Shown: positions 245 to 52,937 of the stretch, piece by piece | How the letters are laid out: each line of letters opens with the position of its first letter | Numbering within the stretch: position 1 is the first letter of the stretch | IMG/VR virus record: IMGVR_UViG_3300036770_006296 | Location: 124,001 to 188,000 of that record | Reading direction: 5' to 3' (one strand) | DNA length: 64,000 nt | The notes under the pieces: model-generated | Database searches by the model: none | What the model was told of the DNA's origin: nothing | Seen by the model: only the letters and a program-made list of their open reading frames with translations | Position numbers and translations under genes: made by a program

Positions 245-1117
245 ATGAAGTATATTAAGCTATTTGAAAATTTTAATGAGCCTGAACAGTTCTGTGAGTA
301 TTGTTTAGAGCCTGTTGATCTTAAGCTTCTTTCTTATGAAGATAAAAGATCTTTTATAAACACAGGGTTATGCTCTAAGTGTTTAGCTGCAAAGAATGAT
401 AAAAAATTTAATCCCGAGATAGGTTTTGATGACGTTGATGATTACCCTGAAATTGGTAAGAGAGGCAGTGAATTAGATTCTGCAGCTCTTGATGAATTGG
501 AAAGCCTAGTGGAAAGGGCTATGAACTATCCGGTAACTAAGGATGGATATTTTAGGTTTTGGGCAGATTTCTTTAGATGGGAGGTTGCTAATAATTATTA
601 TGGGGGCACACAGTTTTTTACTTTTGAAGTAGGAGGTAAACCATCTAAGGATAGAAAAGAATGGATTTATAAGGAGTATTCTCCTAGAACTTTAAAAGCA
701 AGACCTGCTCTTAGAATAGGGGTTAAGCTTTTGGCTCTTAGAAAAAGATTTGCACCTGTATGGAAGGAATCTTCTGACTCTTCTTTTATGAGAAATACAA
801 ATCCAGACGTTTCACCGAATACTCCATACCAGGATGATCTTAACAGGCTTGAGACATCTATTAAAGGGAACGTAAGAGGAGCCGTTATACATAATTGGAG
901 TAATGCTGACCGTAAGGAATTCCATATGACACTTAGAAGAAATGCGTTGAGAAAAGTTGGATTGGCTAATAGACAAAAATTAATGGCTGATCTTGATTCA
1001 GGTGAATATTTTAAAAACCTTAGCTCTAGAGAACTTGAGGAATTAATGAATAATGCCTTAGATTCTGGTGATTTTAAAACTGTAGAGATTTTAAGAAAAA
1101 TTATGTATCCTGGATAG
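245..1117 (+). CDS. Hypothetical protein with CTS-like N-terminus, CxxC..CxxC zinc-finger-like motif and UVR-like C-terminal helix pair
   Basis: Start moved from 143 to ATG 245 (MKYIKLFENFNE) behind GATATATA; FCEYC...LCSKC; ELEELMNNALDSGDFKTVEIL. Confidence 0.8.
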   Translation: MKYIKLFENFNEPEQFCEYCLEPVDLKLLSYEDKRSFINTGLCSKCLAAKNDKKFNPEIGFDDVDDYPEIGKRGSELDSAALDELESLVERAMNYPVTKDGYFRFWADFFRWEVANNYYGGTQFFTFEVGGKPSKDRKEWIYKEYSPRTLKARPALRIGVKLLALRKRFAPVWKESSDSSFMRNTNPDVSPNTPYQDDLNRLETSIKGNVRGAVIHNWSNADRKEFHMTLRRNALRKVGLANRQKLMADLDSGEYFKNLSSRELEELMNNALDSGDFKTVEILRKIMYPG

Positions 1118-1141
1118 TAATCCTATTTCTTCTATAATGGT

Positions 1142-1314
1142 GGGGCCAGGCCCTAAAAATCATCATTGATTGGTTTTAAAAATTTTACGAGCGCGGTGGA
1201 ACAGGGGTTCCTATGGCTTCGCCTCGATTACATACCTTGCCCTCCGGGCTCCTAGATTTTTCTACAGATCTTAAAAACGGCCCTTGGGGCCTTGAGCCTA
1301 AGAATTCATTGATT
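1142..1314 (+). repeat. GC-rich degenerate intergenic repeat, copy B (1142-1229) and partial copy C (1286-1314)
   Basis: GGGGCC....CCTAA.AA(T)TCATTGATT at both 1142 and 1286; block similarity to 156-230. Confidence 0.55.
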
Positions 1315-1334
1315 AGATCTTGGATATATAAGAT

Positions 1335-1847
1335 ATGAAACATATTAAGCTATTTGAGGGTTTTAACGAGGAGCCTATTGTTATACCACAGTTTGTTAAG
1401 GATAGGTTAAGAGATCTGTGTCAGTACTTACGGTCAAGAGATTTATGGGGTTTGAGTATAGATTGTAATATTTATTATAGGGATGACGGGACCTGGAAAA
1501 GCGATTGGCCTATTAGAATTCAAAATAACGAGGGTAAATATGGAGTTTATATTCACTTTAATAGAACCCCAGAGAATTTAAGTGCTAGTGGGGGTATGTA
1601 CTCTGATAAGAATCCTCATATCTATTTTACTAAGGAGACTAATCCTCGTGAAGTGGGTGAGGATATTTATATCCCTTCAGACAATCCATTGGGTAGAGCG
1701 GCTTCTGGGACTCTATATAAAGGAACATATTTATCTGGACGTGGCTATATCAACCATGTAATTTCTAGAGCTTGCGGAGAGGATGAAGAATTTAAAAAAT
1801 TATTATGGGCTCTAATAACAGATATACAAGGAATTTTACCTTATTAA
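1335..1847 (+). CDS. Hypothetical protein, CTS-like N-terminus
   Basis: MKHIKLFEGFNEE; GGATATATA upstream. Confidence 0.8.
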   Translation: MKHIKLFEGFNEEPIVIPQFVKDRLRDLCQYLRSRDLWGLSIDCNIYYRDDGTWKSDWPIRIQNNEGKYGVYIHFNRTPENLSASGGMYSDKNPHIYFTKETNPREVGEDIYIPSDNPLGRAASGTLYKGTYLSGRGYINHVISRACGEDEEFKKLLWALITDIQGILPY

Positions 1848-1860
1848 TCAAATATATCGT

Positions 1861-2355
1861 ATGATCTTTGTTAATGTATACGAGTACTCTTCAACATCAC
1901 ATGGCGATTATATAGTGTATAGATTTTACTCTGGTGACACCGAGGATTCTGTGAAACGTATGATTATAGAGCATACCATCGATTCGTGGGATGGTGCCGG
2001 TGATGTAGTTGTAGATGCTTTGGAAGAATTGAAAGCATCTTTGAGTTTTAAGGAGATTGCAAGAGAGATAAATGATATCATTAATGATCTAGTTATTAGT
2101 GATAATGGACAATTACAGGAATATGATTTAATAATAGGAGATCCCACTTCTGATATTTCATATGGTTTAGATCTTTATGATGACTATAAGAGTGTAGATG
2201 ATAATGATAATTATCAGGGTGTTGATTTTTATTTCTATGGTGGATATGCTATTAAGGTACAGAAGCTATTTCCTTATGCCTATGATCTCATGAAAAATTA
2301 TGGTGTTGTTATAGACAATAAAATCTTTGACAAGATGGTTAAGGAGTTGCTTTAA
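1861..2355 (+). CDS. Acidic hypothetical protein
   Basis: 164-aa ORF in tandem array, AATATAT upstream. Confidence 0.75.
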   Translation: MIFVNVYEYSSTSHGDYIVYRFYSGDTEDSVKRMIIEHTIDSWDGAGDVVVDALEELKASLSFKEIAREINDIINDLVISDNGQLQEYDLIIGDPTSDISYGLDLYDDYKSVDDNDNYQGVDFYFYGGYAIKVQKLFPYAYDLMKNYGVVIDNKIFDKMVKELL

Positions 2356-2370: not shown

Positions 2371-2880
2371 ATGAAACACATTAAGCTATTTGAAAGTTTT
2401 GGTATAAAATACAAGGTGATTGCAGTTAATATGGAAACCAGAGAAGCTGTGGGTGTGTTTCCTTCGTATCGAGATTTAGAGGATAATGCTAAAAAAGGTG
2501 CTTCCATGTTAAGTAGATTTGGAGCGGTAGAAGGAGCCGAAGATATCTATGATAGTCTTAATCCGAAAGCAACTGATCAGAGTTATTATTTTGTTTACCC
2601 TATGATAGATATACCAGATGATCATGACATTGTTGTTTGTAATAACTCTTCAGGAACTCCTGAGATATCTACTATGTCATCTAGGGATTTAAAAGAACCT
2701 GCTGTGGGTGATTCTTCTATGTATAATTGGTATACGAATGATGATGGTAGTGTTCATAATGTTTATTATAGAGTAGACAGAAATTCTGGAAAATTTGTAA
2801 TGGTGGGAGCGTATGGACATGTTGATAGAATGAGTCCAGATGAGATAGTTGAAATGTATAACTACGGCGCATCACTTTAG
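2371..2880 (+). CDS. Hypothetical protein, CTS-like N-terminus, internal KGASMLSRFG motif
   Basis: MKHIKLFESF; KKGASMLSRFG encoded at about 2491-2523. Confidence 0.8.
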   Translation: MKHIKLFESFGIKYKVIAVNMETREAVGVFPSYRDLEDNAKKGASMLSRFGAVEGAEDIYDSLNPKATDQSYYFVYPMIDIPDDHDIVVCNNSSGTPEISTMSSRDLKEPAVGDSSMYNWYTNDDGSVHNVYYRVDRNSGKFVMVGAYGHVDRMSPDEIVEMYNYGASL

Positions 2881-4902: not shown

Positions 4903-5200
4903 CAAGAAATATAAAAAAATGGAATATAGAATCAAGAGTATCGAATACTTCGACGAACATGGAAAATCTAAATACTTAAATTACTTCATAGAGTATAGAG
5001 TGAAATTTTTATTCTTTTGGGAAAGATGGAAAGAGGTTACTCATTTAAGCTGCGGAATGTGTGATTGTCATAATGTAACAACATACTTTAATAGTTTAGA
5101 GGAAGCAGAAGAATTTGGTAAAAATCATTTGTGTAGTGGAAAAATTTATGACGGGCATGAGATTACCACTATTAAGACTTTAAGTTGTAAATCTGAATAG
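4895..5200 (+). CDS. Hypothetical protein
   Basis: Start moved to ATG 4895 overlapping the previous stop. Confidence 0.65.
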   Translation: MSNKKYKKMEYRIKSIEYFDEHGKSKYLNYFIEYRVKFLFFWERWKEVTHLSCGMCDCHNVTTYFNSLEEAEEFGKNHLCSGKIYDGHEITTIKTLSCKSE

Positions 5201-6011: not shown

Positions 6012-6029
6012 CTAGATTTAATCCCACTC

Positions 6030-6493: not shown

Positions 6494-7060
6494 TCATAAT
6501 GATTTCAATCGATCTATTGGAAAATTATCAATAGAATATTTGGTAACTATAGCATGAGAGTTTGGTCCTCTTAGGTTCCGAGTTAAGTTGTTGTATGTGT
6601 CTGTTATATCGGTAGTTTTTGTAACAATCATACCAGCTTCCTGTGCTTTTTTCATTATGAAATGGCCATATATTCGGGATCTTCTATCGTCACCTTCAGA
6701 CTCTGACTTTGCAACAACTATAATGGAAATGAGATTGCCGCCTTTACTTCTTTCTTTAGCCCATTCTTTTACTGCCCACCATACACTCCCCATAACATCT
6801 TGCATATTATTTCTTCCTGTGAGATCGTCCGTATATTGATCTCCTGAGGTTTCTGCTTTAGATGAGAAATGTATTTCGAGTGTTACTGTGTTGTCCTCCC
6901 ATCTTCTAACTAGAATAAAAACACGGTATGGGTATCCGTCTATCTCAAATTCATATGTTATATCCTCATCCCTTGCAGGAATCTTGTTTATAACTTTGAT
7001 GTCTGGGATTGTGTCCCACATCTCATTAAGAAATTGACGGTATTTAAGTAAGGAACTCAT
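6494..7060 (-). CDS. Hypothetical protein, CTS-like N-terminus
   Basis: MSSLLKYRQFLNE; GGATATATA upstream; domain resembles C-terminal half of 14291-15232. Confidence 0.8.
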   Translation of the reverse strand: MSSLLKYRQFLNEMWDTIPDIKVINKIPARDEDITYEFEIDGYPYRVFILVRRWEDNTVTLEIHFSSKAETSGDQYTDDLTGRNNMQDVMGSVWWAVKEWAKERSKGGNLISIIVVAKSESEGDDRRSRIYGHFIMKKAQEAGMIVTKTTDITDTYNNLTRNLRGPNSHAIVTKYSIDNFPIDRLKSL

Positions 7061-7087
7061 TCAATTTATATATCCTTATTTTATAGG

Positions 7088-7891
7088 TCATGATTTTTTA
7101 GAATACCTATTATTATAGTTTTGAGCGTACTTATCTAATTCTTTAGGATTAGATTTTAAATATTGTACCTCCTTAGATGTTAATGGATATATCTCCTTTA
7201 TTAATTCCCCCATTTTTTTAGTAAGAGCCGGGGTGAAATCTTTTTGTGTTCTATACGGAGAAAAATAATCTATGAATCCCAGTAATTTTGCGGGGTGTTC
7301 TTTAGGATCTGTAGAAATACTAGGATCTGATATTTTTCTAGTAAGTATGAAAGTTCCGTATCCTTCTCTTCCTCCGTCTAGAGGGTTTGTGTTTCCCTCT
7401 ATTCCTGTCCATGTTCCTGCTGATTTATCTACCGAAAGAACTATTCCAGTATGGCCCTTTCCTGGATATGCTCCTTTTTTATCTCTGCTTAGATAGCAAA
7501 AGACCATGCCTGGTAATATTTTATTTGCGTCCATTCCTTCTGTATAGACTAATTTTTTACCTTTGGTTGTTTCCCAGTGATATTTAACCGCTGCGCTGCT
7601 TGGTATTTTACTAAGATCCTCTGGTTTAAACTTTGTTTTAGATAGAGCACCTTTAACGAAGCCAACACACCAAGGATTTCCTGGGGTTACATTTACTCCT
7701 TTTAGTAGGGTTTCGACTTCTGGTCCCTTATTGCTTCCCCTCGGCTTTTCCTCTGCTATAGAAGATTTAATTGCAGAATAAAAACTATCTATTAGATTTT
7801 TATTTTCTTGTGAGGTGTTTACAGACTCTTGGAGACTACTTTTTTGTAGATCATTATTTTTAAAATTCTCGAAAAATAATATATGCTTCAT
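7088..7891 (-). CDS. CHAP-family peptidoglycan amidase/endopeptidase, CTS-like N-terminus
   Basis: SNKGPEV...PWCVGFV (Cys), GHTGIV (His), IEGNTN; MKHILFFENF. Confidence 0.8.
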   Translation of the reverse strand: MKHILFFENFKNNDLQKSSLQESVNTSQENKNLIDSFYSAIKSSIAEEKPRGSNKGPEVETLLKGVNVTPGNPWCVGFVKGALSKTKFKPEDLSKIPSSAAVKYHWETTKGKKLVYTEGMDANKILPGMVFCYLSRDKKGAYPGKGHTGIVLSVDKSAGTWTGIEGNTNPLDGGREGYGTFILTRKISDPSISTDPKEHPAKLLGFIDYFSPYRTQKDFTPALTKKMGELIKEIYPLTSKEVQYLKSNPKELDKYAQNYNNRYSKKS

Positions 7892-7894
7892 TGA

Positions 7895-8257
7895 TTATTT
7901 ATCCTTTAGTTTTTGTGTTTTTCTTTTGGATGCTTCACACTTAGATACCGCGTAATCGTGTGCTCTCTTAAGCCTACTTTTAGTGTCCGGATCTTTTGCT
8001 CTTCTCACAGCAACACGCAGTCTTTGTTCTATGAGATTTAGTATTTGTGACTGTCTTTGATGTGATTTGGATTTAAAAGCTTTACTGTTAACTGTTGCTT
8101 GTACGTCTTCTTTTGTACGAAATTTAACTGGAACGGTGTCACTAGGATTCTCATCCGTGTATAGTCTTCTCCCTGATCCTTTAGGTTTTTTTCCTGTGCC
8201 TTTTCTTGGATCATTTCCTTCGTTGATAAAATCATTAAAGTTTGACAGATGCCTCAT
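7895..8257 (-). CDS. Basic hypothetical protein, CTS-like N-terminus
   Basis: MRHLSNFNDFINE; DPRKGTGKKPKGSGRRLYTDENP segment recalled from conserved viral hypotheticals. Confidence 0.8.
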   Translation of the reverse strand: MRHLSNFNDFINEGNDPRKGTGKKPKGSGRRLYTDENPSDTVPVKFRTKEDVQATVNSKAFKSKSHQRQSQILNLIEQRLRVAVRRAKDPDTKSRLKRAHDYAVSKCEASKRKTQKLKDK

Positions 8258-8289
8258 GTGGTATATATTAAAAAAAGAATATATAAAGC

Positions 8290-8757
8290 ATGATACAACA
8301 CTACGAAGAATTTATAGCAGAAAAGAAAAATCCATGCTGGCCTGGTTACAAGCAGATAGGCACAAAAAAGAAGAATGGTAGGATGGTTCCTAATTGCGTA
8401 AAGGAAAGTGAACTTTCTGGTTACTCGCAAGATTCCTATATAAACGAGGAAAGCGAATCCCACCAAGAATTTGCAGAGAATAGATTAGCGGGAGCAACAA
8501 AAATATCCAAAGCGGCAAAGGAGAAGGGTGGCGATGCTCTACTAACATACCATCATTTTCACGTGAAACTTCCATATTATCAAAAAGCCGTTGATGGTGA
8601 ATTAGAGATGGAAGAACTTAAGGGTGAATATGATAAATTACTAACGGATCTTTATGAAGCCACTAGAAATTCTATGAATATCACGCAGGTAAAATTCCAA
8701 GAGCTTGTTGGAAAGATAGAAGTTGTAGGTGAGCTTTTAATTGAAAACAATAAATAA
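8290..8757 (+). CDS. Putative internal head protein
   Basis: MIQHYEEFIAE nearly matches the T4 IPII/IPIII CTS MKTYQEFIAE; followed by CWPGYKQIGTKKKNGRMVPNCV module. Confidence 0.75.
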   Translation: MIQHYEEFIAEKKNPCWPGYKQIGTKKKNGRMVPNCVKESELSGYSQDSYINEESESHQEFAENRLAGATKISKAAKEKGGDALLTYHHFHVKLPYYQKAVDGELEMEELKGEYDKLLTDLYEATRNSMNITQVKFQELVGKIEVVGELLIENNK

Positions 8758-8765: not shown

Positions 8766-9572
8766 TTGAAATATATTAAACTATTCGAGTCTTTCCTTAA
8801 CGACTCCTCTACTATTATATTATTCGGACCCCAAGGGGTTGGTAAAAGCACACTTGCAAAAGAACTAGGTAAACAACTAAACATGGAAGTAGTTGGATCC
8901 GATGATTTTATTGATCAGGGAAATTGGTCAAAAGAAGAGATATGGAGTAAAGGGTGGCAAGTTAGAAAACAAAACGAATATAAAGGTATGATTAAGTACC
9001 TTAATGATAATTTAGGTAAGCCTGTTATATTGGACGTTGGTGGTAGCCATGGAGTATGGGACGGTAGAATGTTAGAAGATATTATGAATATGCTAGAACC
9101 ATATCCTAATAGATTCTTAATAATACCTTCTAAGAATGAAATAGAAAACCAAGAGTTTTTAAGAGGTAGATTATTGAAAAGAGAATTGGATATGCACCCA
9201 TCCAATATTAAATATTGGGAAGCTGTTTTGAAGGGTGATACAAGCTTTGCAAAAGATTTTGACCAAGAAAAAAGGAATGAATTTTTAGAGAGAGTAGAAC
9301 TAGTAAGGAAAGAAGAAAAATATAGAACAATGGCTATGAATATGCTTAAATCTAGCCAGAACAGATATAACTCTCTAAAAAGCGGGGTTGAGTGGATGGT
9401 TTACGGTAATTCACCAGAACAAAAATTCGATTTTGAAATGAATAAGATTGAGGATTATTCTAAGTTCTTTATAGACACGATGAAAAATTCAGGAATAGCT
9501 AATCACATAATTTATAATAAGGATAAGCCCTCCAATTTGTTAGTTGATGAAATAAAAAAATTATTAAAATAG
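8766..9572 (+). CDS. P-loop kinase (shikimate/nucleotide kinase-like), CTS-like N-terminus
   Basis: IILFGPQGVGKST Walker A, VVGSDDF, ILDVGG; TTG start LKYIKLFESF (an ATG GCA TTT lies 8 nt upstream, out of frame). Confidence 0.8.
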   Translation: MKYIKLFESFLNDSSTIILFGPQGVGKSTLAKELGKQLNMEVVGSDDFIDQGNWSKEEIWSKGWQVRKQNEYKGMIKYLNDNLGKPVILDVGGSHGVWDGRMLEDIMNMLEPYPNRFLIIPSKNEIENQEFLRGRLLKRELDMHPSNIKYWEAVLKGDTSFAKDFDQEKRNEFLERVELVRKEEKYRTMAMNMLKSSQNRYNSLKSGVEWMVYGNSPEQKFDFEMNKIEDYSKFFIDTMKNSGIANHIIYNKDKPSNLLVDEIKKLLK

Positions 9573-9573: not shown

Positions 9574-10299
9574 ATGAGACATTTAAAATTATTTGAATCG
9601 TTTATAGCTAAGAAAAATCCTAACTATAAAAAACCTGAGTATGAATTTAAAGAGTTCTATAGGGCTTTTAAATCTTATCCAGAGTTAAGAGAGCTTCTCC
9701 CCTCGGAGATAGACCAAGATATATTTGATATTAGAGAAGATGGATTTGGGGGAGAGCCAAAATGGTTAGAAAACCACGTGGATCCGCCTAGCAAACCGGG
9801 CGAAATAACAACTGATGAACTCTTAGATATAGCTGAGGAAAGAGATCCAAGATTTGTTCCTTTTATTCTTTGGTGTCGTGAATTATTTGAATGTGGGGAA
9901 ATGGAAAAGATTCCTCTTGATTATTTAAGGAGAGGATTAGCTACTACATTTAAAAATCATGATTGGGATATTTTAGAGAAAGATCCGGATTATTTAGGTA
10001 AATGTGAGAGCGAATACAATAAAGCAATCGAAGCAGGATTAGACGACTATACCCTTGGTAATACATTAGGGCTTGTAAAAAAATATCCAGACATTGCTAT
10101 AAACATGGCTCAATTCTGGGCGACTTACATAAAAGGATCCATAGCACACTTTAACCGTGTTGAAGAAAGTGGAGGACAATTACCATGTACACAGTTTATA
10201 TTGTATAGAGGTAATTACTACACAATAGGAGGTAGAAGAAGAATGTTCTGGCACTTCTATAATCACATAGATCCCACAGTTTGGATAATGGAACAATAA
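9574..10299 (+). CDS. Hypothetical protein, CTS-like N-terminus, weak ParB/Srx-like C-terminal motif
   Basis: MRHLKLFESF; YYTIGGRRRM. Confidence 0.7.
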   Translation: MRHLKLFESFIAKKNPNYKKPEYEFKEFYRAFKSYPELRELLPSEIDQDIFDIREDGFGGEPKWLENHVDPPSKPGEITTDELLDIAEERDPRFVPFILWCRELFECGEMEKIPLDYLRRGLATTFKNHDWDILEKDPDYLGKCESEYNKAIEAGLDDYTLGNTLGLVKKYPDIAINMAQFWATYIKGSIAHFNRVEESGGQLPCTQFILYRGNYYTIGGRRRMFWHFYNHIDPTVWIMEQ

Positions 10300-10771: not shown

Positions 10772-10797
10772 GATATATAATAGTAAATAATAAAAAA

Positions 10798-11538
10798 ATG
10801 AAAAAGCACCTTAAATCTTTTGACGATTTCTCTTTAAATGAGGGGATATTTGACATCTTTAGAAGTAAGAAAGAAATGCCTCCTAGCTTTGGTTATTCAC
10901 CGGATAAGAGTAAAGACTCTTATTTAAAATCCGCTACACATTCACAGATAAATATAACTTATGAAACCAGCTGGGATGCTTCTTTTGTTATTGATATTTC
11001 GGGAGATTTAATATCAAAAGGGAGAGATAGCTATGTTATAACACCTAGAAAAATTAAGGTTTTTCCTACATATAAAGGATCAACATACGGTGGTACAGTA
11101 AATAATATTCCTATCGATTTTTATGGACATTATTATAATAGGGGAACGGATCAATATGAGAAAAACCCAATTCCTTTACAACAAAGTCAGCGTTTGAGTG
11201 AAATTGATGATTTGGAGGATGATATTAACAGAGAAATGCAGTCTCATATAGGAAAAGATTTAACACTTAGTTTTTATGAATTGGATCTAGAAGCTTGGGC
11301 AGAAGAACATTCGGACCCTCTGTTTATAATGGGAAAGAAAACTCCTAGTTGGGTAAAAAATGGTGTTAAGCTTCCTTTGATTGAAGGAGGGGAACTTCCA
11401 GAAACAAATTTATTAGACGATAGAAATAGGTTAAAAGAGGCTATTTGGGTAAGCATCTCTGGGATGGGATATGCCTTTGCAAGACCAGGAAATGGTATAT
11501 TGAGAGAAATATCTGTTTATAGCACAGAAATGTGGTAA
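10798..11538 (+). CDS. Hypothetical protein, CTS-like N-terminus
   Basis: MKKHLKSFDDFSLNE; GGATATATA at 10781. Confidence 0.8.
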   Translation: MKKHLKSFDDFSLNEGIFDIFRSKKEMPPSFGYSPDKSKDSYLKSATHSQINITYETSWDASFVIDISGDLISKGRDSYVITPRKIKVFPTYKGSTYGGTVNNIPIDFYGHYYNRGTDQYEKNPIPLQQSQRLSEIDDLEDDINREMQSHIGKDLTLSFYELDLEAWAEEHSDPLFIMGKKTPSWVKNGVKLPLIEGGELPETNLLDDRNRLKEAIWVSISGMGYAFARPGNGILREISVYSTEMW

Positions 11539-11553: not shown

Positions 11554-11841
11554 ATGAAAACATTCAATGATTATAAATACGGGAGATTAGATGAATACCA
11601 AGCTCCTTTTTATTCCTCCGCCGAAAAGATCAAGGCAATAGTTTCTAGCGACACTGTTGCTAGTAAAATGGGAATGCAAAGTGTAGATTATATAAATCAA
11701 AAGTCTGAATTAGTTTACGCACTTAAAAGTAATGCTGTTCCTGGATATTATTTTAAGGTCACTTTAAACGAGACGCCAGGAAATCAGTACGGGGAAGGTA
11801 AAAAATATTCCGTACTATCGGTAGAAAAACTCGTACCTTAA
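11554..11841 (+). CDS. Small hypothetical protein, CTS-like N-terminus
   Basis: MKTFNDYKYGRLDE. Confidence 0.7.
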   Translation: MKTFNDYKYGRLDEYQAPFYSSAEKIKAIVSSDTVASKMGMQSVDYINQKSELVYALKSNAVPGYYFKVTLNETPGNQYGEGKKYSVLSVEKLVP

Positions 11842-11844: not shown

Positions 11845-12489
11845 ATGAGATATATTAAATCAATAGATCAATTTATAAACGAGCAGCTATTTTCTGATGC
11901 TAATAGATTTGCTAAATTACTAGGTTTAGGAGGAGGTGAGGCAGGTGCTTCTGGCTCAGACTCTCCCAGCGGACCAGTTTCCACTTCCCGAAATGACGAG
12001 GCATCGTGCCCAAACTACGACTGCTGGACTCACTTTGGTAAGGATGCTTTTTGGAACGGAACAAGTCAAATAGGAGGTAGAACAGTACCAAAGATAACAA
12101 TCCAAAAATCTCCAACATCTTTTAATATTAATTATGATGGACCTGCTTCGGGATTTCTACTTAAACATGCCAAAGGGGGTAAAGGAGATACTATCCATCA
12201 GTTATTAAATGTTCTAACATTAGAGCTTAATGAGTACCTTAAAACTATAAGTGTCAAGCCTGACGTGAAAAATATTAAGATGGAAATGGTGGGAAGTAAA
12301 TTAAGTGTTTCTGTTCCTCTTGTTAAGGTTCCCGAAGGCGTCCACTATCTTATAGCAAGAAGAGGAGGATTAGGTCATGGAGGGGATTTTACTGGACTAA
12401 TGAAATATAAAAAAATGGAAGGATACGAGGAGGCTAAGCACAAATCGGGTAGTCTCACAGAAAAGTTTGTAACGGTAATAAGCAAATAG
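11845..12489 (+). CDS. NEQLF-module protein 1 (unknown C-terminal domain)
   Basis: MRYIKSIDQFINEQLFSDANRFAKLLG then Gly/Ser linker. Confidence 0.8.
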   Translation: MRYIKSIDQFINEQLFSDANRFAKLLGLGGGEAGASGSDSPSGPVSTSRNDEASCPNYDCWTHFGKDAFWNGTSQIGGRTVPKITIQKSPTSFNINYDGPASGFLLKHAKGGKGDTIHQLLNVLTLELNEYLKTISVKPDVKNIKMEMVGSKLSVSVPLVKVPEGVHYLIARRGGLGHGGDFTGLMKYKKMEGYEEAKHKSGSLTEKFVTVISK

Positions 12490-12500: not shown

Positions 12501-13490
12501 ATGAAAGATCTTAAATATATTTTATTGTTTGAAAATTTTTCTAATGCTATTGATATTAATGAAAATGCTAAAGAAAATTTAAAAACATCCACTAAATTTT
12601 TAAGACTAAAGCCTAGATTTTTATCGAAGATCAAAAAGATCCTTGGTGTATCTAATGATAAAGAACTTGCTAAAGAAGACATCAAGCAATTTCAGAAAAA
12701 AAGAGGAATAAAAGAGGATGGTAATTTAGATCACAGAACTATTCTTTCCGGGTTAAAAGGTGAAGAACCAGATAACACTAATAATCTCTCCAAAGAAACC
12801 CCTACTATACCGGGTGAAAAATCTCCCATAAAAAATGCTAAAGCTAATGAGAATTTTATAAGTGAAGAGAACGAGACCGATTATTTAGCTAAATATACGT
12901 CGCAAAAAAAACAAGTAATAGGGTTCTTAAACTCGATATTTCCTTCAACGTTACCTTTTATAAATGATAAGGTTGATTCCGCTATCCCGCCTAAATTTGA
13001 AAAGTGCTATACAGTAAATTATCTAGTTTCCTCTAAGGAGGTTTGCTTTAGTGCGGGTCTTAGTGTTGAAATTAAATCAATAAAAATAAAAGACGCTACA
13101 TTCACTGCTCCCACAGAGTTTAAAGCAGATGGATATGTTAAAGGTAAACTAAAAGGGACTGTTGATCTTAAATTTTTTGCCCATATTATAGGGGAAAAGG
13201 GAATAGGCGATGATCTTTCGATAGATTTCGAGCAGAACGTTTGGTTTTATAAATTCTCTCAAATACAGATATATCCTCCATTATTAAACATATCAACAAA
13301 GATCTATGATCTTGGGGTTGTTTGGGCTTGGGTTTCTAATAATAATTTCAAAATAGAAAACTCATTAATTGGAACATATAAATGGGATCTTCCTATCCAA
13401 AAGAACGTAAACACATGTTTTGATCCTAAAGGAGGACCTTACATAAAAAATGTATCATCTTCGGATCTTAATAAATGGATATCCATATAA
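12501..13490 (+). CDS. Hypothetical protein, CTS-like N-terminus, PG-binding-like motif
   Basis: MKDLKYILLFENF; IKQFQKKRGIKEDGNLDHRT resembles PG_binding_1; flanked by the 78-bp repeats. Confidence 0.75.
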   Translation: MKDLKYILLFENFSNAIDINENAKENLKTSTKFLRLKPRFLSKIKKILGVSNDKELAKEDIKQFQKKRGIKEDGNLDHRTILSGLKGEEPDNTNNLSKETPTIPGEKSPIKNAKANENFISEENETDYLAKYTSQKKQVIGFLNSIFPSTLPFINDKVDSAIPPKFEKCYTVNYLVSSKEVCFSAGLSVEIKSIKIKDATFTAPTEFKADGYVKGKLKGTVDLKFFAHIIGEKGIGDDLSIDFEQNVWFYKFSQIQIYPPLLNISTKIYDLGVVWAWVSNNNFKIENSLIGTYKWDLPIQKNVNTCFDPKGGPYIKNVSSSDLNKWISI

Positions 13491-13574: not shown

Positions 13575-13605
13575 TTTCGGATATATAAAAAATATTAGAT
13601 AAAAA

Positions 13606-14313
13606 ATGAGACACCTTAGATCTTTTGAAGAAATAAACGAACATCTCGGAGGCAGAGATACAAGCAGCATCGATAGAATGAAAGCTAAATATCCTAAAGG
13701 CATAGAAATACCACGGAGTATCACAGCAAAAGGGACGGGAGCTTTTGAAATTGGCGTAGACTCATTAGATCCTAAATCTAAAAAATTCTTAGATATAGTC
13801 CAATTAATTAATGATCTACTTCAAAACTCTAAAGGAACTGTTAACGTTACTGTTAGTGCTGGAGCCTCTGCAGTAGGACAGGGAAGATATGATAATCAAG
13901 GTCTTGCTGAAAGAAGAAGAGATAACACTATAAAAGCTCTTAAAAACTATCCATTCATTGACCCAAGCAGAATTAAATTTACCGCAGGTAAGGCGATTGT
14001 TGGTAAATCTACGGTCAAAGACTCAAAAGAGGCAGAAGCTGAACAATTTGTTAGTGTTGACATTTCTGGAACTGGAAGCTTAAATGTTCCTGTGACTGGA
14101 GTAGAAGGAGATAACACTAACGTTTATCGTCCTGAGCTTTTTAAAAATTCTTTAGATAAGGATGATAACATACCTGTAGATATAAAAAGAATCTGTATCC
14201 AATTACCTAAGCCTTATGTTGAAAAATTTGTTAAAATGTTAGGGGAATTTAGAAAGGAGAATAATTTTAAGACAATACCTTACGGAATCTATGACATCCT
14301 TCCTAAAAAATAA
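13606..14313 (+). CDS. OmpA-like (peptidoglycan-binding) domain protein, CTS-like N-terminus
   Basis: MRHLRSFEEINE; VTVSAGAS...YDNQGLAERRRDNTIKAL resembles the OmpA-C N..L...RA motif. Confidence 0.65.
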   Translation: MRHLRSFEEINEHLGGRDTSSIDRMKAKYPKGIEIPRSITAKGTGAFEIGVDSLDPKSKKFLDIVQLINDLLQNSKGTVNVTVSAGASAVGQGRYDNQGLAERRRDNTIKALKNYPFIDPSRIKFTAGKAIVGKSTVKDSKEAEAEQFVSVDISGTGSLNVPVTGVEGDNTNVYRPELFKNSLDKDDNIPVDIKRICIQLPKPYVEKFVKMLGEFRKENNFKTIPYGIYDILPKK

Positions 14314-15690: not shown

Positions 15691-16029
15691 ATGAAGGAGC
15701 TGATAATGTTTAAAACCGACAAAGAGGATTATCAGAAATTTATAATCAACTTTGGTATAATCCCTACACTTATACTACTTCAGAAATTTGAAACACTAGA
15801 ACTTTATGAGGAATGCGCAAAAATTTTAGGAGCTATAAATGCTATAAATAAAAAAGCATTAATCTACAAACAAACAAAGCTAACAGACGATCTGATAAGT
15901 GAGGTGGTGGACGATTACAGAAAAATGGGAATGGAAGATATGGATAAAGAAAAATTAATGGTCAGATCTGAACGTTACGCCTCTATGTTTATATCCAATA
16001 ATTCCTTTATGATTTTTAAATCTAAATAG
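15691..16029 (+). CDS. Hypothetical protein
   Basis: 112-aa ORF; FETLELYEECAKI UVR-like helix. Confidence 0.65.
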   Translation: MKELIMFKTDKEDYQKFIINFGIIPTLILLQKFETLELYEECAKILGAINAINKKALIYKQTKLTDDLISEVVDDYRKMGMEDMDKEKLMVRSERYASMFISNNSFMIFKSK

Positions 16030-16393
16030 ATCCTCTTTTTATAGACAGATACCCATCCTCGTGATATTCAGCACCTATACTTTTCCAAAAATCCATACTC
16101 TCCTGTGTGGGCATTGCTAGGAAGTAGTTCACGCTGGGAAATTTATCAAACAATCTTCTTATTGCTAGTCTACCTATCCCTTTCCCTCGAAATTCTTCGT
16201 ATACATGAATCCCTGCGATCTCGGCCTCATCATATCTAAGATTTTCCTTGTAAAACCCGACATCTAATATACCAGCTTTTCTGTTATTAAAATAAATTGC
16301 AAAGGATTTGTATTGTGGTGCTTCTTCCACTAAAACAAGATCGAGATGAGCTAAATCAAGATAGTGTTCTTCGAAAAGTTTAATGTGTATCAT
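16022..16393 (-). CDS. GNAT-family acetyltransferase, CTS-like N-terminus
   Basis: IHVYEEFRGKGIGR acetyl-CoA motif A; FWKSIG motif B; MIHIKLFEE. Confidence 0.85.
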   Translation of the reverse strand: MIHIKLFEEHYLDLAHLDLVLVEEAPQYKSFAIYFNNRKAGILDVGFYKENLRYDEAEIAGIHVYEEFRGKGIGRLAIRRLFDKFPSVNYFLAMPTQESMDFWKSIGAEYHEDGYLSIKRGSI

Positions 16394-17138: not shown

Positions 17139-17164
17139 AGGATATATAATATTATATTTATAAA

Positions 17165-18077: not shown

Positions 18078-18581
18078 ATGAAACATATTAAACTTTTTGA
18101 AAACTTTGATCCTATAAATGAATCCGACTTTGTTGTTGATAACTATAAAATGAGTGCAACAAAAGACGGTGAGATACAAGTAGTGGACACTGCTGCTAAT
18201 AAAACTTATGTTTACGTTGTTAGTGCAGGTGTAGTTGGGATAAAAGTTAAGGATTTCCCAGAGGGTAATTCTATTCTAGTTAGTGCTTTAGGTAAAAGCA
18301 TAACTAGTCCTCTTTCTAAAGAAGGGACAACAATTAAATCCATCAAGGAAAATTTAGGGAAGTCTAAAATAAAGTTCGATCTTCCTGGTGCATCACTCAC
18401 GCTGACATGTAAAACCGGATGTGAAAAATCTGCAGATAATGTTGCTAACATAAAAGTTACTGCGGAAGAAATGGATATAGATTTGAGTGATGTACTCGAT
18501 TCAGCAAAAGAAGCAGGGCACAATGTCATGAAAGCGGTAGAGGGAGGAGCAGATAAATTAAAATCGCTCCTTAAATGGTAA
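18078..18581 (+). CDS. Hypothetical protein, CTS-like N-terminus
   Basis: MKHIKLFENFDPINE. Confidence 0.8.
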   Translation: MKHIKLFENFDPINESDFVVDNYKMSATKDGEIQVVDTAANKTYVYVVSAGVVGIKVKDFPEGNSILVSALGKSITSPLSKEGTTIKSIKENLGKSKIKFDLPGASLTLTCKTGCEKSADNVANIKVTAEEMDIDLSDVLDSAKEAGHNVMKAVEGGADKLKSLLKW

Positions 18582-27694: not shown

Positions 27695-27698
27695 ATCT

Positions 27699-39149: not shown

Positions 39150-39189
39150 ATCCTTTTTTATTCTTTAGTAGAATTTCTATTTTTATATC

Positions 39190-40891: not shown

Positions 40892-40937
40892 AATTTAGGT
40901 TTTTATTTTGGGATATATAATGTAAAAATTATATCCC

Positions 40938-49706: not shown

Positions 49707-49768
49707 ATCTGCTAATTTAATAAATAAATTAAAAAGCAAAAGGATATATAAAGATAATAGAGACAAAA

Positions 49769-50596
49769 ATGAGACATCTTAAATCATTAGAAGAGTTTAG
49801 AATAGTTAATGAGCAGCTATTTAAAGATGGCGAAGCATTAATGAAACTCTTAAGCGGAGGTAAACTTCAGGATTCTCCTGTAGAAGGATCAGTAACAATA
49901 AAAGGAGGAGCTATATCAGGGGATAAAGCCAAAAATGCACAAGCAGTGATAAATTCTATGAATAAGCATGGAATAACAAACCCTTACACACAAAAAGCAA
50001 TACTAGGTGTAATTGGTAAAGAGTGCGGGTTCATACCTCAAAATGAGACATCATACTCTACCACTTCTTCTGCTAGAATAAGAAGTATATTTGGTGAAAG
50101 AGTTAGTAAAATGACTGATGCACAGATTGATCAGTTAAAAAAGAACGATGAAGCTTTCTATAATTACCTGTACGGCGGAAGATACGGAAATGCTCCTAAT
50201 GAGGGATACAAATATAGAGGTAGAGGATTTAATGGTATAACATTCAAAGGGGTTTACCAAAAAATGAATGATCTCATGAATCGGATTGGAAAGCTGGATA
50301 GAAAGGTTGATCTAGTGGCTAATCCAGATGTCATTAATGATATAGATGTTGCTGCAGAATCTGCAGTGCTTTATTTTATAGACAGGGCTTCTTCCCCAGA
50401 AATGAACAAGAAATATGGTGTTAAGGATCTAAACGGATTCAAAGACGAGGAAACAGCAGTTAAAGCTATGGTTCATGCAAATGCTGGATGGGGATCTAAT
50501 ATGAATTCTCCGTTTCTAGCAACTAGCTTAAATAAGGCTAAGGATATGGCTAAGCAATTTAGTATTGCAGATTTAGGTCAAAATAATTTAGCTTAA
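49769..50596 (+). CDS. NEQLF-module protein 4, GH19/lysozyme-like domain
   Basis: MRHLKSLEEFRIVNEQLFKDGEALMKLLSG; AILGVIGKECG...QNE; YRGRGFNGITFKGVY. Confidence 0.8.
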   Translation: MRHLKSLEEFRIVNEQLFKDGEALMKLLSGGKLQDSPVEGSVTIKGGAISGDKAKNAQAVINSMNKHGITNPYTQKAILGVIGKECGFIPQNETSYSTTSSARIRSIFGERVSKMTDAQIDQLKKNDEAFYNYLYGGRYGNAPNEGYKYRGRGFNGITFKGVYQKMNDLMNRIGKLDRKVDLVANPDVINDIDVAAESAVLYFIDRASSPEMNKKYGVKDLNGFKDEETAVKAMVHANAGWGSNMNSPFLATSLNKAKDMAKQFSIADLGQNNLA

Positions 50597-50597: not shown

Positions 50598-50939
50598 TTA
50601 TCTTCTAAATTTATTAGGAAACATTCTTCTCCACTCGTGACCTTGTGGAATGTCCTTTGCTCTTACACCGAATATCTTTTCTTCTGGGCATGGATCCATT
50701 TCTCTAACCATTCGATTGTTCATCCAGGTCTCTATTTTAACAAAGTTATTATTACAAGCCCAAGATTCTATTGATCTGTTCCATGATGAACCTGTCATAA
50801 ACGGAAAATTTGTATTTGAGTTATTAACGACATCCGTTATTTGACTTCCTTGAAGTTCAACTTTTATCTCACCAAAATTCCTATGCTTAAGAATCATAGT
50901 CCTTTGGTTGAAATTTTCGTATAGTTCTATATAATTCAT
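50598..50939 (-). CDS. Hypothetical protein, CTS-like N-terminus
   Basis: Start moved to 50939 (MNYIELYENFNQ). Confidence 0.75.
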   Translation of the reverse strand: MNYIELYENFNQRTMILKHRNFGEIKVELQGSQITDVVNNSNTNFPFMTGSSWNRSIESWACNNNFVKIETWMNNRMVREMDPCPEEKIFGVRAKDIPQGHEWRRMFPNKFRR

Positions 50940-50940
50940 T

Positions 50941-51615
50941 TTATTTTTTACATCTTCCTGTTTTAAAACCATCTGGTATTTTTTCCCCCTCGGGTATTCT
51001 TTTGTTTTCTAGCAATACAGGATTGTAATACCATTTATAATTCTTTTTTCTCATTGGATTATTATCGCCTGAAAATCTTTCCCTATATCCATTTATTATA
51101 CTTTCGTAATTTTCACCGAATCTTTGTCTTTCGTTTTTATATTTGGATCTTGATTTTTTTAAATTTATTTTTATATTTTCTGCTTTTTCTAAACCGTATA
51201 TTTCTTCTAAAGATTTTCCTTTTTTCCTTTTTGTGCTGTCGTGATTCTTTGATAATTTTTCCTTGTGGTCTAAAGAGAATTCCCTATTTTTAAGTGCTTT
51301 ACTAATTTTATTTTTTATTTCATCCAATTTAGGATTATTGCTCATTGTATCTCCTCCGTCGCCGCCTTTAGATATATTATATCCTATATTCCTATCATTA
51401 GATTTATAAAATTCTATCCAATATTTTTCAGAATTAGATAGATCCTCGTAATTATCTGTTTCGTATATTATTTCTTTTTGAAAATATTCTATTCCATATT
51501 TTTTTATAGCTCTTTTAATTAATACACCCGAACCCATATAATTTTTATTAGAAAGTGTATCTTTACCTATGTATATTTTGCCGTCTAATATATTAGTTAT
51601 TATATAAACCTGCAT
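50941..51615 (-). mobile_element. Free-standing GIY-YIG homing endonuclease (Seg-like, NUMOD3-type tail)
   Basis: VYIITN...KIYIGK; YMGSG; E.YWI; GYNISKGGDGG; KISKALK...DHKEKLS. Confidence 0.88.
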
Positions 51616-51626
51616 ATTTTATATTT

Positions 51627-52199
51627 TTACCAAGGATTGCTAGATTTAATACCTATCAATTTACGATAACGTGAGATATTGCACGACCAGTATTTAGCTT
51701 TCCATTTAGGCCCAGGTTGATCACAGCGCATTCTTTTTTGAAACGATCTTGCTTTTTTAGGATCTGCATTATTAACTCTCATTCCTGGTTCACCGAATCC
51801 AACCTTAACAATGTTACCGCTTTGATTTTTTGTGTATACACCAAATTTCCTAGGACCTGAAGGTGTTCTGAAAGGTCTATTGAGGTTTACTTTTCTACCC
51901 CTATATTCTGCCTCATGTAGCTCTTCTACATCTTCAAAAGGTATGTCGAGAAAAACCTCTCTTCCCTCATATATTCCCCTTTTGCCAGCATCAGTACCAA
52001 CCAACCAGATTTCATCTTCAGTTAGTCCAATATTTCCTTCATTAAATAATATTCTAGCTTCGTTAACAAGATCTAACCACGCTTCTGATTCCACCCTAAA
52101 AACGCTTTCTAGTAAGCCTATACCGTTGTTAAAGTGATAAGATAAGTTCTCAGATAAGGAATTATTATTAAATGCGTTAAAATCGCTTATATGCTTCAT
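51627..52199 (-). CDS. Basic conserved viral hypothetical, CTS-like N-terminus
   Basis: MKHISDFNAF; AEYRGRKVNLNRPFR...KFGVY...VGFG...KAKYWSC; GGATATATA upstream. Confidence 0.8.
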   Translation of the reverse strand: MKHISDFNAFNNNSLSENLSYHFNNGIGLLESVFRVESEAWLDLVNEARILFNEGNIGLTEDEIWLVGTDAGKRGIYEGREVFLDIPFEDVEELHEAEYRGRKVNLNRPFRTPSGPRKFGVYTKNQSGNIVKVGFGEPGMRVNNADPKKARSFQKRMRCDQPGPKWKAKYWSCNISRYRKLIGIKSSNPW

Positions 52200-52214
52200 A
52201 TAAATTATATATCC

Positions 52215-52937
52215 TTATTTGATTAGATCATTCTGAAACATAATATCACATATGTATCTTGAGATTTTTGTATCCGATGGATAGTGGATGCCAACCACCT
52301 CCCTGCTTCTTGCAATTTTTTCTCCTACTTCTCTAACCTCGGACGCAATTTCAGGATGTTTTCTTGCATAATGCTCTGCCATTGTAAATGCAGTGAGTGC
52401 GTGCCCGCTCGGGTAAGCTGCGGTCATGGCATCAGTTCTTATTAATGGATACAATGGAATGTCATAAGCTTTAGCTAACTGATATGGCCTAGGCCTATTA
52501 ATGACGTCCTTCAAATAATTAAGAATCGCGTCCGTTTGGTTGTCTATCCTAAAATATCCATCCATAGTCTCTTCGTATCCTTTTGAATTTAAAAAATCTA
52601 TAAAAATGTTTGGTAGATTGCTCTGGTCATCAGCGTATCTAGCAAATGTAACATCATCTCCCGTTGCATTTGATGTTAATTCTAGTAATTCTTCTAGGTC
52701 TTTTCTTGTAGTTTCGCTGTCGTTCAAAGGAGCTTCTTTTATGATCTTTTCTATTAGCCCCTCTTTTTCGAACCATTTTCTTATGGGATCATTCTTATCT
52801 TCTATGATCTCCTTGAATTCAATCGGTGCATTTCCATAAACTATTTGATTAATATCAACGGTTTTTTCTGACTTATTTAAAGATTGCTCAAGAATTATAG
52901 AATTATTTAATTCTTTAAAATAGCTTATATACTTCAT
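52215..52937 (-). CDS. PAP2-superfamily phosphatase, CTS-like N-terminus
   Basis: K....RPRP, YPSGH, SR...GIHYPSD; MKYISYFKE. Confidence 0.88.
   Translation of the reverse strand: MKYISYFKELNNSIILEQSLNKSEKTVDINQIVYGNAPIEFKEIIEDKNDPIRKWFEKEGLIEKIIKEAPLNDSETTRKDLEELLELTSNATGDDVTFARYADDQSNLPNIFIDFLNSKGYEETMDGYFRIDNQTDAILNYLKDVINRPRPYQLAKAYDIPLYPLIRTDAMTAAYPSGHALTAFTMAEHYARKHPEIASEVREVGEKIARSREVVGIHYPSDTKISRYICDIMFQNDLIK

Follow-up and report, generated by a model that had tools for sequence, protein, structure and literature searches.

The window analysed here is a 64,000-nucleotide stretch of DNA (positions 124,001 to 188,000 of IMG/VR virus record IMGVR_UViG_3300036770_006296) with a GC content of 33%, and it belongs to a roughly 200-kb uncultured Bacteroidota phage. 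Between positions 245 and 52,937, about thirty otherwise unrelated open reading frames (ORFs) begin with variants of the same short peptide. These ORFs, one weak additional candidate and one example of an associated upstream motif are as follows.

245..1117 (+), tagged ORF, 290 aa, MKYIKLFENFNE; TGATATATA ends 5 nt before the ATG; no Pfam or PHROG hit
1335..1847 (+), tagged ORF, 170 aa, MKHIKLFEGFNE; GGATATATA at 1322-1330, 4 nt before the ATG
2371..2880 (+), tagged ORF, 169 aa, MKHIKLFESF; no hydrophobic-x-Glu after the core
4919..5200 (+), weak additional candidate, 93 aa, MEYRIKSIEYFDE; matrix score 8.1, the best of the starts outside the initial annotation
6494..7060 (-), tagged ORF, 188 aa, MSSLLKYRQFLNE, T4-CTS-like variant; GGATATATA at 7067-7075, 6 nt before the ATG
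7088..7891 (-), tagged ORF, 267 aa, MKHILFFENF; CHAP peptidase domain (PF05257, E=1.3e-5)
7895..8257 (-), tagged ORF, 120 aa, MRHLSNFNDFINE; very basic body
8290..8757 (+), tagged ORF, 155 aa, MIQHYEEFIAE, near-identical to the T4 CTS core YQEFIAE
8766..9572 (+), tagged ORF, 268 aa, TTG start, (L)KYIKLFESF; the P-loop kinase-like domain starts at residue 17
9574..10299 (+), tagged ORF, 241 aa, MRHLKLFESF
10798..11538 (+), tagged ORF, 246 aa, MKKHLKSFDDFSLNE; GGATATATA at 10771-10779
11554..11841 (+), weakly resembling tagged ORF, 95 aa, MKTFNDY...LDE
11845..12489 (+), tagged ORF, 214 aa, MRYIKSIDQFINE
12501..13490 (+), tagged ORF, 329 aa, MKDLKYILLFENF...INE
13606..14313 (+), tagged ORF, 235 aa, MRHLRSFEEINE; GGATATATA at 13579-13587
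16022..16393 (-), tagged ORF, 123 aa, MIHIKLFEE; GNAT acetyltransferase (PF00583, E=3e-8)
17165..18061 (+), tagged ORF, 298 aa, MEKRVKSFTQFFE; very acidic body; GGATATATA at 17140-17148
18078..18581 (+), tagged ORF, 167 aa, MKHIKLFENFDPINE; identical copy in another IMG/VR locus (L035)
19276..19671 (-), tagged ORF, 131 aa, MKNLILFENF
19676..21271 (-), tagged ORF, 531 aa, MNHLKNFLQFINE; GGATATATA at 21331-21339, 59 nt upstream
25811..27415 (+), tagged ORF, 534 aa, MNYIETFESF...INE; the only tagged protein with a transmembrane-like segment
27699..28382 (+), tagged ORF, 227 aa, MKRIKLFENF; GGATATATA at 27685-27693, 5 nt before the ATG
28683..29075 (+), tagged ORF, 130 aa, MRHIRLFENF; GGATATATA at 28654-28662
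31246..31560 (-), tagged ORF, 104 aa, MLTKYKEFLKLYE, T4-CTS-like variant
31562..31918 (-), tagged ORF, 118 aa, MIKKYKDFLSINE, T4-CTS-like variant; TGATATATA ends 4 nt before the ATG
33052..33783 (+), tagged ORF, 243 aa, MKHLKSIDEF..ANE
33785..34561 (+), tagged ORF, 258 aa, MKHIKNIQEF..LYE; CHAP domain (PF05257, E=3.4e-6)
40911..40919 (+), the motif GGATATATA before an untagged late-type gene (GH19 + PG_binding endolysin, 40938-41750)
49769..50596 (+), tagged ORF, 275 aa, MRHLKSLEEF..VNE; endolysin-like body (phrog_181, E=5e-19); GGATATATA at 49742-49750
50598..50939 (-), tagged ORF, 113 aa, MNYIELYENF
51627..52199 (-), tagged ORF, 190 aa, MKHISDFNAF..LSE; GGATATATA at 52206-52214, 6 nt before the ATG
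52215..52937 (-), tagged ORF, 240 aa, MKYISYFKEL..ILE; PAP2-like (PF01569, E=8e-8), no transmembrane segment

The observation made in the initial annotation, that about 30 unrelated ORFs share this N-terminal peptide, is confirmed: all 30 of its N-termini are present at the stated places as the starts of ORFs of 95-534 aa, and the candidate at 4919 is our addition. Five of the tags (245, 27699, 33052, 33785 and 50939) begin at an internal ATG of a longer mechanically called ORF, although at 245 and 27699 a promoter-like motif lies 5 nt upstream, which supports the tag ATG as the true start. A 9-column weight matrix separates 24 starts (11.8-28.9 bits) from all 520 other Met-initiated ORF starts in six frames (at most 8.1 bits); however, this matrix was trained on the tags themselves and the test is circular, and as such we rely on the independent tests that follow. 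The protein bodies are unrelated, in that among the 31 proteins cut after residue 16 no BLASTP pair scores better than E=0.02. Codon choice at the conserved K, H, I, L, F, E, N, S, R and Y positions does not differ from genome-wide synonymous usage (all p>0.05), so that the synonymous variation is real and selection acts on the peptide. Four members (8290, 31560, 31918 and 7060) are T4-CTS-like rather than of the main type, and the member at 11554 is weak.

The initial annotation did not recognize that the tag is a widespread feature of a viral clade, that it is linked to a class of promoter, or that it is not unique to this genome. A scan with the back-translated pattern for M[KR]H[ILM]KLFE gave at least 155 matches in 120 IMG/VR stretches, in contrast to only 28 matches, which is chance level, in 596 Gb of bacterial and archaeal genomes. 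Furthermore, a 32-position profile found 144 proteins at E<=0.001 among 1.84 billion representatives, and in 131 of the 144 the match starts at residue 1. The consensus of the tag is MKHIKLFEQF[IVL]NE, and conservation stops after Glu13. In 130 distinct IMG/VR tags selected only on residues 1-8, F10 is present in 78%, I/V/L11 in 65% and E13 in 67% (against 7% in controls), while a hydrophobic-x-Glu site at positions 11-13 occurs in 55% against 3% in controls, and positions 14 onward are unconserved. By our reading of the translations, about 22 of the 31 window tags have such a site ending at residues 9-24; about 9 (for example 2371, 8766, 9574 and 28683) lack one after the core, other than the LFE inside the tag.

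Tag-bearing relatives encode T4-type head machinery, namely Portal_T4 (E=8e-72), a Peptidase_S77 prohead protease (E=9e-14) and the Gp23 capsid protein (E=1e-28), and tagged genes flank these directly in four of the related loci (L107, L106, L091 and L052). The conserved gene just after the capsid gene in 80 related loci starts M.KLKTYsEFVNE or MKRVKSYNeFIAE. The site that closes the tag is also found at the start of capsid proteins of the clade: MYANQLINE|AEV, MIKLINE|AEI in LR756500.1, and ...SEFINE|A in the cultured Chryseobacterium phage MA9V-2, in which small ORFs beside the portal and protease genes start MKTFTYFINE|A and MKNFFSFINE|A. The PolB of the window phage is closest to that of Mahaphage LR756500.1 (41% identity), a genome that has portal, protease and capsid genes and about 20 tags of the variant MKYIKEYEEF[IL]xE. 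T4-type head genes do not by themselves imply the tag, however, as the T4-like pelagiphage HTVC008M has none. Nor did we find the head module of the window phage itself: no portal, protease or capsid hit was returned anywhere in the 206-kb contig, which was seen almost end to end, nor in about 50 kb of tail-module sequence mostly from related contigs.

Within the window, tagged genes are preferentially preceded by GGATATATA, of which there are 13 exact copies against 1.4 expected. The sequence ATATATA lies 3-30 nt upstream of 17 of 31 tagged genes against 9 of 80 untagged genes (odds ratio 9.6, p=4e-6), and most of the other tagged genes follow one in the same operon. As the same motif precedes portal, protease and post-capsid genes in relatives, and tail-fibre-like genes of this phage, we read it as a late promoter, a label that rests on which genes it precedes rather than on expression data. 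It had been proposed beforehand that the packaging reading would fail were the tag equally common on metabolic and early genes, and this condition did not refute it: about 30 consecutive early-type genes of the same phage, which carry a host-type promoter cassette (Bacteroidota TAnnTTTG type), have no tag. With respect to the tagged proteins themselves, 30 of 31 have no transmembrane-like segment, and several are peptidoglycan hydrolase-like (CHAP twice and the endolysin phrog_181), which is a typical role of ejected virion proteins; a separate untagged GH19 endolysin exists.

The initial annotation interpreted the peptide as a capsid-targeting label directing dozens of proteins to prohead loading, maturation cleavage at [ILV]-x-E and injection, as a modular delivery code with engineering value, and this interpretation is partly supported. 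The explanation that we favor, with moderate confidence, is that the shared N-terminus is a cleavable prohead-targeting propeptide of the T4 capsid targeting sequence (CTS) kind, present on dozens of soluble late proteins. In T4 the sequence MKTYQEFIAE is cut once, and any protein fused to it is packaged (PMC8442874; PMC5694885; PMC3012670); the window holds MIQHYEEFIAE as well as KY[KR][EDQ]FL..E variants beside the main type. In this view, a roughly 13-residue, probably amphipathic-helical tag (M-K/R-H/Y-I/L-K-L/S-F-E/D-x-F, ending in hydrophobic-x-Glu) would dock late proteins on the scaffolding core while the prohead assembles, a T4-gp21-type (Peptidase_S77) prohead protease would then clip it off after the Glu, and the cargo would stay in the head with the DNA, available for ejection into the next cell. 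The existence of the tag, its N-terminal position, its selection at the peptide level, its restriction to viruses and to a clade, its conserved terminal Glu, its association with the promoter motif of head genes, its absence from early-type genes and its proximity to T4-type head genes in relatives are established by the analysis, whereas scaffold binding, cleavage, retention in the virion and injection are inferred without proteomic or structural evidence for any tagged protein, and the delivery code and its engineering value likewise remain inference. Lineage-specific variants of the tag fit co-evolution with a partner protein. An AlphaFold model of one tagged family was too poor (pLDDT 46) to say more than helix at residues 2-13, then coil. 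If the reading is correct, the protein cargo of a virion might be readable from sequence alone.

It remains possible, though we consider it doubtful, that the tag is a protein-level module of late proteins with another role and is not packaged, such as a docking peptide for a phage chaperone or assembly factor, an oligomerisation helix, or an N-terminal degron read by the phage's own ClpP/AAA+ system to time protein turnover. Peptide-level selection and an N-terminal position fit any peptide signal, the window encodes ClpP (36371, + strand), AAA+ ATPases and a tmRNA, and about 9 of its tags lack a clear cleavage site. Furthermore, the at least 37 tagged genes in one genome, far above the handful in T4, include 500-700-aa proteins and MoxR-type ATPases in the replication region, which are odd cargo for a capsid, and the transmembrane-like segment of the tagged protein at 25811 also counts against the packaging reading. 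Such a role, however, does not explain the conserved Glu boundary, the same ...INE|A on capsid proteins, the T4-CTS-like N-terminus of the conserved post-capsid gene, or why tagged genes lie beside portal and protease genes in relatives.

An RNA-level requirement appears unlikely. The gap from motif to ATG is bimodal (4-6 or 14-22 nt); the many tagged genes starting 4-6 nt after the promoter motif probably have leaderless mRNAs, and the first 10 codons, which are A/U-rich, could be postulated to act as a translation-initiation ('downstream box'-like) element. Yet Leu, Ser and Ile codons vary freely within the tag, tags also occur on genes with leaders, inside operons and in phages with other upstream sequences, untagged genes (30677, 32974 and 42652) use the same promoter at the same spacing, and what is conserved is a pattern of hydrophobic and charged residues that ends in Glu. 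That the pattern is an artefact, whether through chance similarity of AT-rich N-termini (in which MK... starts are common), paralogy from gene duplication or wrong start calls, is very unlikely. Some neighbours do share a little sequence beyond the tag (33052, 33785, 49769 and 11845 read ..NEQLF..), but the contrast between viral and cellular matches, the placement of profile matches at residue 1, the clean separation of the (tag-trained) matrix scores, the lack of similarity between bodies and the different Pfam domains behind the tag all argue against this.

[quoted passage not shown] There also, a 10-20-residue N-terminal peptide is the only thing shared by otherwise diverse proteins, with the pattern aromatic-x-x-Phe-hydrophobic-x-Glu, and the clade described here has, in addition to its T4-type portal, S77 protease and gp23 capsid protein, a gp55-like small sigma factor. 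The main tag nonetheless is 3 residues longer (MK-HIK-LFEQFINE) and not alignable by standard searches, occurs at an unprecedented multiplicity (at least 37 times per genome against about 6-8 in T4), is carried by putative cargo that includes many enzymes up to 700 aa, and is found in jumbo or mega phages of Bacteroidota. The propeptides of the ejection/inner-body proteins of phiKZ, 201phi2-1 and SPN3US (PMC5694885; PMC10052503) are likewise thought to target proteins to the prohead, in jumbo phages that load about 50 head proteins, and are cut after Glu; however, they are cut by an S80-type protease at A/S-x-E, with Ala or Ser rather than Ile/Leu/Val/Phe at P3, are mostly longer than 100 residues, do not form a shared short consensus, and belong to a different phage lineage. 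The phage P1 Dar system and encapsulin cargo-loading peptides also use short or modular signals to load enzymes into a protein shell, but P1 loading depends on DarA/Hdf and on N-terminal regions without a shared consensus, and encapsulin signals are usually C-terminal, are not removed and have no sequence likeness to this tag. Last, the hypervariable internal-protein loci of T-even phages encode diverse anti-restriction proteins that share only the CTS (reviewed in PMC3012670). The labelled genes here fill tens of kilobases and have no detectable relation to T-even internal proteins, but the notion of a constant address label on rapidly changing, possibly anti-defence, cargo is common to both, and an Acb1-like 2H phosphoesterase carries the tag in other phages.

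The N-terminal peptide under study is present at the start of all 30 of the open reading frames for which the initial annotation had claimed it, and one further weak candidate begins at position 4919, and as such the observation itself is confirmed. A weight matrix separates 24 of these starts from every other Met-initiated ORF start in the window, although this matrix was trained on the tags themselves and the test is therefore circular. However, three independent controls agree with it. The pattern M[KR]H[ILM]KLFE occurs at least 155 times in 120 IMG/VR stretches, whereas it occurs only 28 times in 596 Gb of cellular genomes, which is about the number expected by chance, and a profile search of 1.84 billion representatives returned 144 significant hits, of which 131 start at residue 1. 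The bodies of the 31 tagged proteins are unrelated by BLASTP, with no pair scoring better than E=0.02, and different Pfam domains lie behind the tag (P-loop kinase, CHAP twice, GNAT and PAP2). Codon choice at the conserved residues equals genome-wide synonymous usage, and selection therefore acts on the peptide and not on DNA or RNA.

The window has a GC content of 33-36%, is densely packed with small ORFs, and lies at about positions 124,001-188,000 of a metagenome contig of 206,617 bp, Ga0310126_0000076 (= IMGVR_UViG_3300036770_006296). A megablast search with 20 kb of sequence against 50,697 phage records gave no match, and neither did tblastn searches of the phage records with the tagged bodies of 33785, 21271 and a further tagged family (L018), or with a 20-residue tag. 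The family-B DNA polymerase of the contig is closest to that of the 462-kb 'Mahaphage' LR756500.1 (41% identity), followed by other Mahaphages and Lak phages, and the contig also carries gp32, a UvsW-like helicase and a split PolB. The source is therefore an uncultured jumbo phage of Bacteroidota from the T4-related PAU/PTm1/Lak/Mahaphage assemblage. Apart from the tagged genes, the identifiable genes of the window include a Dda-like helicase, a GH19 endolysin with a PG_binding domain, NADAR and GGACT, together with an accessory set that is unusual for a phage and two structural RNA features:
24717-25577, 48511-49392, 42706-44472, 45071-46510, 46512-46943, 36371-36943, 29806-30177 and 31975-32955: two full sigma-70 factors with Bacteroidota-style N-termini (a third lies upstream, at position 2871 of locus L156), two histidine kinases plus a response regulator, ClpP, AdoMet decarboxylase and deoxyhypusine synthase
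5594-6014 (+): phage-encoded tmRNA (ARAGORN; Rfam RF00023, 85 bits)
22223-22348 (+): tRNA-like gene of 126 nt with an insertion of roughly 55 nt (Rfam tRNA, 40.6 bits), which was not called by ARAGORN and may be an intron-containing or otherwise unusual tRNA

To define the extent of the tag, we examined 130 distinct IMG/VR tags that had been chosen only on residues 1-8. Beyond residue 8 the conservation continues, with Phe10 in 78% (aromatic residues in 95%), Ile/Val/Leu11 in 65%, Asn12 in 38% and Glu13 in 67%, the last against 7% in untagged N-termini, after which it stops abruptly. A hydrophobic-x-Glu site at positions 11-13, which is the form of a prohead-protease site cut after Glu, is found in 55% of these tags against 3% of controls, and the consensus reads MKHIKLFEQF[IVL]NE. 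The copies in the window are looser, and by our reading about 22 of 31 have a hydrophobic-x-Glu site ending between residues 9 and 24. Other lineages have their own version of the peptide, such as LR756500.1, which uses MKYIKEYEEF[IL]xE about 20 times. With respect to the T4 capsid targeting sequence (CTS), MKTYQEFIAE (PMC8442874), four window variants and the gene that follows the capsid gene in the clade match Y/F-x-E/Q-F-I/V/L-x-E closely, whereas the main type needs a 3-residue insertion to align, and 10 residues are too few to permit a statistical test of homology.

A link to head assembly of the T4 type emerges from the relatives. A tblastn search with the core proteins of pelagiphage HTVC008M against the tag-bearing loci found gp32, gp61, UvsW and gp43 in many of them, and portal, gp21-type protease and gp23 capsid protein in several. 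Pfam confirms Portal_T4, Peptidase_S77 and Gp23, as well as a small, region-2-only sigma factor like gp55. In four of these loci (L107, L106, L091 and L052) tagged genes sit directly between or beside portal, protease and capsid genes. In 80 loci fetched with the capsid protein, the capsid protein starts MYANQLINE|AEV, and the conserved next gene starts M.KLKTYsEFVNE|A or MKRVKSYNeFIAE|S, which is almost the T4 CTS. In the cultured Chryseobacterium phage MA9V-2, the capsid protein has ...SEFINE|A at residue 24, and small ORFs beside the portal and protease genes begin MKTFTYFINE|A and MKNFFSFINE|A. The Chryseobacterium phage MA9V-1 likewise carries FINE|A N-termini on the capsid protein and on small head-module ORFs. 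The ending of the tag thus equals the likely maturation site of the clade's own capsid proteins. In T4, all head-internal proteins use CTS propeptides of 10-20 residues that gp21 removes after Glu (PMC5694885, PMC3012670). It should be noted that T4-type head genes are not always accompanied by the tag, as HTVC008M, examined over its whole genome, has such head genes but no tag. The head region of Tenacibaculum phage pT24 shows no clear tags. Furthermore, no portal, protease or capsid gene of the window phage itself was found in the 206-kb contig, which was seen almost end to end across its replication, early and accessory regions, or in about 50 kb of tail and baseplate sequence taken mostly from related contigs, and its head module lies outside the sequence that was reached. 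A tail module lies on the contig IMGVR_UViG_3300035670_008749 (77,632 bp), which is 97% identical to a close relative over the one 293-aa protein compared. Giant ORFs with weak tail-fibre matches lie at the break of the contig, and they may be the reason that the assembly stops there:
L264:8075-13381 (-): ORF of more than 1,768 aa
L275:4043-10816 (+): ORF of 2,257 aa

The upstream sequences suggest that the tagged genes are expressed together with head genes, although this is by promoter inference only. The motif GGATATATA occurs 13 times in the window against 1.4 expected, and the looser NNATATATA lies 4-6 or 14-22 nt before about 30 ORFs, about 20 of which are tagged. When ATATATA was counted at 3-30 nt upstream, it was found before 17 of 31 tagged genes against 9 of 80 untagged genes (odds ratio 9.6, p=4e-6), and the tagged genes without a motif of their own mostly follow a motif-bearing gene on the same strand. 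The same motif precedes portal, protease and the post-capsid gene in the 80 related loci, protease and capsid genes in LR756500.1, and tail-fibre-like giant ORFs of this phage, while a TATATATA motif ends 8 nt before the 5' end of the tmRNA, which suggests that it is transcribed from the late-type promoter. We read the motif as the late promoter of the clade, an analogue of T4's TATAAATA, and this reading is an inference. The late-type motif ends only 4-6 nt before the ATG of 12 genes (e.g. at 1322-1337, 8277-8292, 27685-27701, 31918-31931 and 52199-52214), which suggests leaderless late mRNAs, whereas a second class has a spacing of 14-22 nt.

By contrast, about 30 consecutive small genes at record positions of about 99-119 kb (L239:1-20543 of the 206-kb contig) are each preceded by a different, near-identical cassette, AATCATTTTTTT..TAGAAnnTTCTAyATTTG/TTAGC..AACCAATTAAA, which is also seen in the window at about 3880, 4280 and 23700. 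The cassette ends in TAnnTTTG-like boxes, which are of the Bacteroidota housekeeping type, and looks like an early, host-sigma-type promoter. None of these genes has a tag. The initial annotation had held that its reading would fail if the motif were equally common on metabolic and early genes, and on this evidence the tag is not on early-type genes. It does, however, occur on some enzymes, among them MoxR-type AAA+ ATPases of the replication region, which sit next to untagged VWA/DUF2201 genes and start with CTS-like tags (MGKRIYNFNEFVNE, MSKRIKNFSDFVNE):
L247:1441-3045 and L245:6507-8000: the MoxR-type AAA+ ATPases

With regard to the putative cargo, 30 of 31 tagged proteins have no transmembrane-like segment, and the secreted and membrane proteins of the window are untagged. 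At least three tagged proteins look like peptidoglycan hydrolases (the CHAP proteins at 33785 and 7891 and the phrog_181 endolysin at 49769), which would suit ejected entry enzymes, while the untagged GH19 protein at 40938 is the likely lysis enzyme. In another phage, a 2H-phosphoesterase / Acb1-like protein (anti-CBASS family) carries the MKHIKLFEDFVVE tag, and two further loci, L102 and L046, have similar N-termini:
L085:1897-2439 (-): the Acb1-like protein

Several other explanations for a shared N-terminus accord poorly with these data. Sec, Tat or lipoprotein signal peptides would possess a hydrophobic core of 7-15 residues, with or without a lipobox or twin-arginine motif, but the tag alternates charged and hydrophobic residues, and the real signal-peptide-like N-termini of the window (2907, 28417, 44469 and 45071) are untagged. 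Mobile promoter or DNA cassettes, such as the PeSL-type repeats of T4-type phages, would be conserved at the nucleotide level, whereas synonymous sites within the tag vary as they do in the rest of the genome, and paralogy and chance are likewise rejected by the unrelated bodies and by the counts in viral and cellular sequence. The propeptides of phiKZ/SPN3US-type ejection proteins are long (often more than 100 aa) and are cut at A/S-x-E by an S80-type protease, while the tags are about 13 aa with Ile/Val/Leu/Phe at P3, and the protease of the clade matches S77 best and S80 more weakly. An AlphaFold2 model of a conserved 178-aa tagged family was too weak (pLDDT 46.5) to inform any of these readings.

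Given these observations, we consider a capsid-targeting propeptide to be the best explanation and somewhat more likely than not, on evidence that is coherent but indirect. The interpretation given in the initial annotation, that the tag directs proteins to prohead loading, maturation cleavage and injection, is as such supported in part. What the analysis itself establishes is the existence of the tag, its N-terminal position, the selection upon the peptide, its sharp end at Glu, its association with the ATATATA motif and its proximity to T4-type head genes in relatives, whereas the packaging of the tagged proteins, the cleavage of the tag, the injection of the cargo and the late timing of expression are inferred. 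In this view the tag would work like the T4 CTS, although 10-13 residues do not suffice to settle membership in that family. The CTS of T4 is established, and what is different here is the multiplicity of the tag, with at least 37 copies in about 195 kb of this genome, and its spread across a large uncultured clade. No paper in the searched library mentions the tag, and no virion proteomics was found there for any tag-bearing phage, the MA9V-1 paper containing SDS-PAGE only.

A broader proposal, which is possible but which we regard as less likely than not, is that a whole clade of Bacteroidota jumbo and mega phages (the window phage, Mahaphage-like genomes and hundreds of IMG/VR contigs) uses a 13-residue, sequence-readable address label to load dozens of different soluble enzymes into the capsid. 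Such cargo would include peptidoglycan hydrolases, kinases, acetyltransferases, phosphatases, ATPases and Acb1-like anti-defence enzymes, delivered ready-made with the DNA, and the 'injected proteome' of uncultured phages could then be predicted from genomes alone and would be an order of magnitude richer than in T4. If the tag is indeed a packaging label, it gives a sequence-only means to list the virion cargo and ejected proteins of uncultured jumbo and mega phages, which include relatives of the largest phage genomes known, and would show that such phages carry a large pre-made enzyme set into the cell. It would also offer a second, independent capsid-loading peptide beside the T4 CTS for studying how scaffolds pick their cargo. 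Two by-products of the analysis stand irrespective of this reading, namely the separation of the early and late promoter classes of this phage group, as inferred from sequence, and the indication of leaderless late mRNAs.

The head region of Prevotella phage Lak-A2 (locus L274) has its own recurrent N-terminus, where MNK[LQ]I[KR]xL[IL]E[NS]LFDD[IY]DD begins three ORFs of about 350-390 aa. These may be paralogues or may carry a different tag, and ORFs in this region close only if TAG is read through:
L274:8554-9717 (+), 37988-39034 (-) and 39118-40167 (-): the three ORFs of Lak-A2

Within the window, two genes that are probably mobile genes of the homing-endonuclease type lie between tagged genes:
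50941-51615 (-): GIY-YIG-like gene (MQVYIITNILDGKIYIGKD)
55367-55693 (+): T5orf172/MUG113 gene
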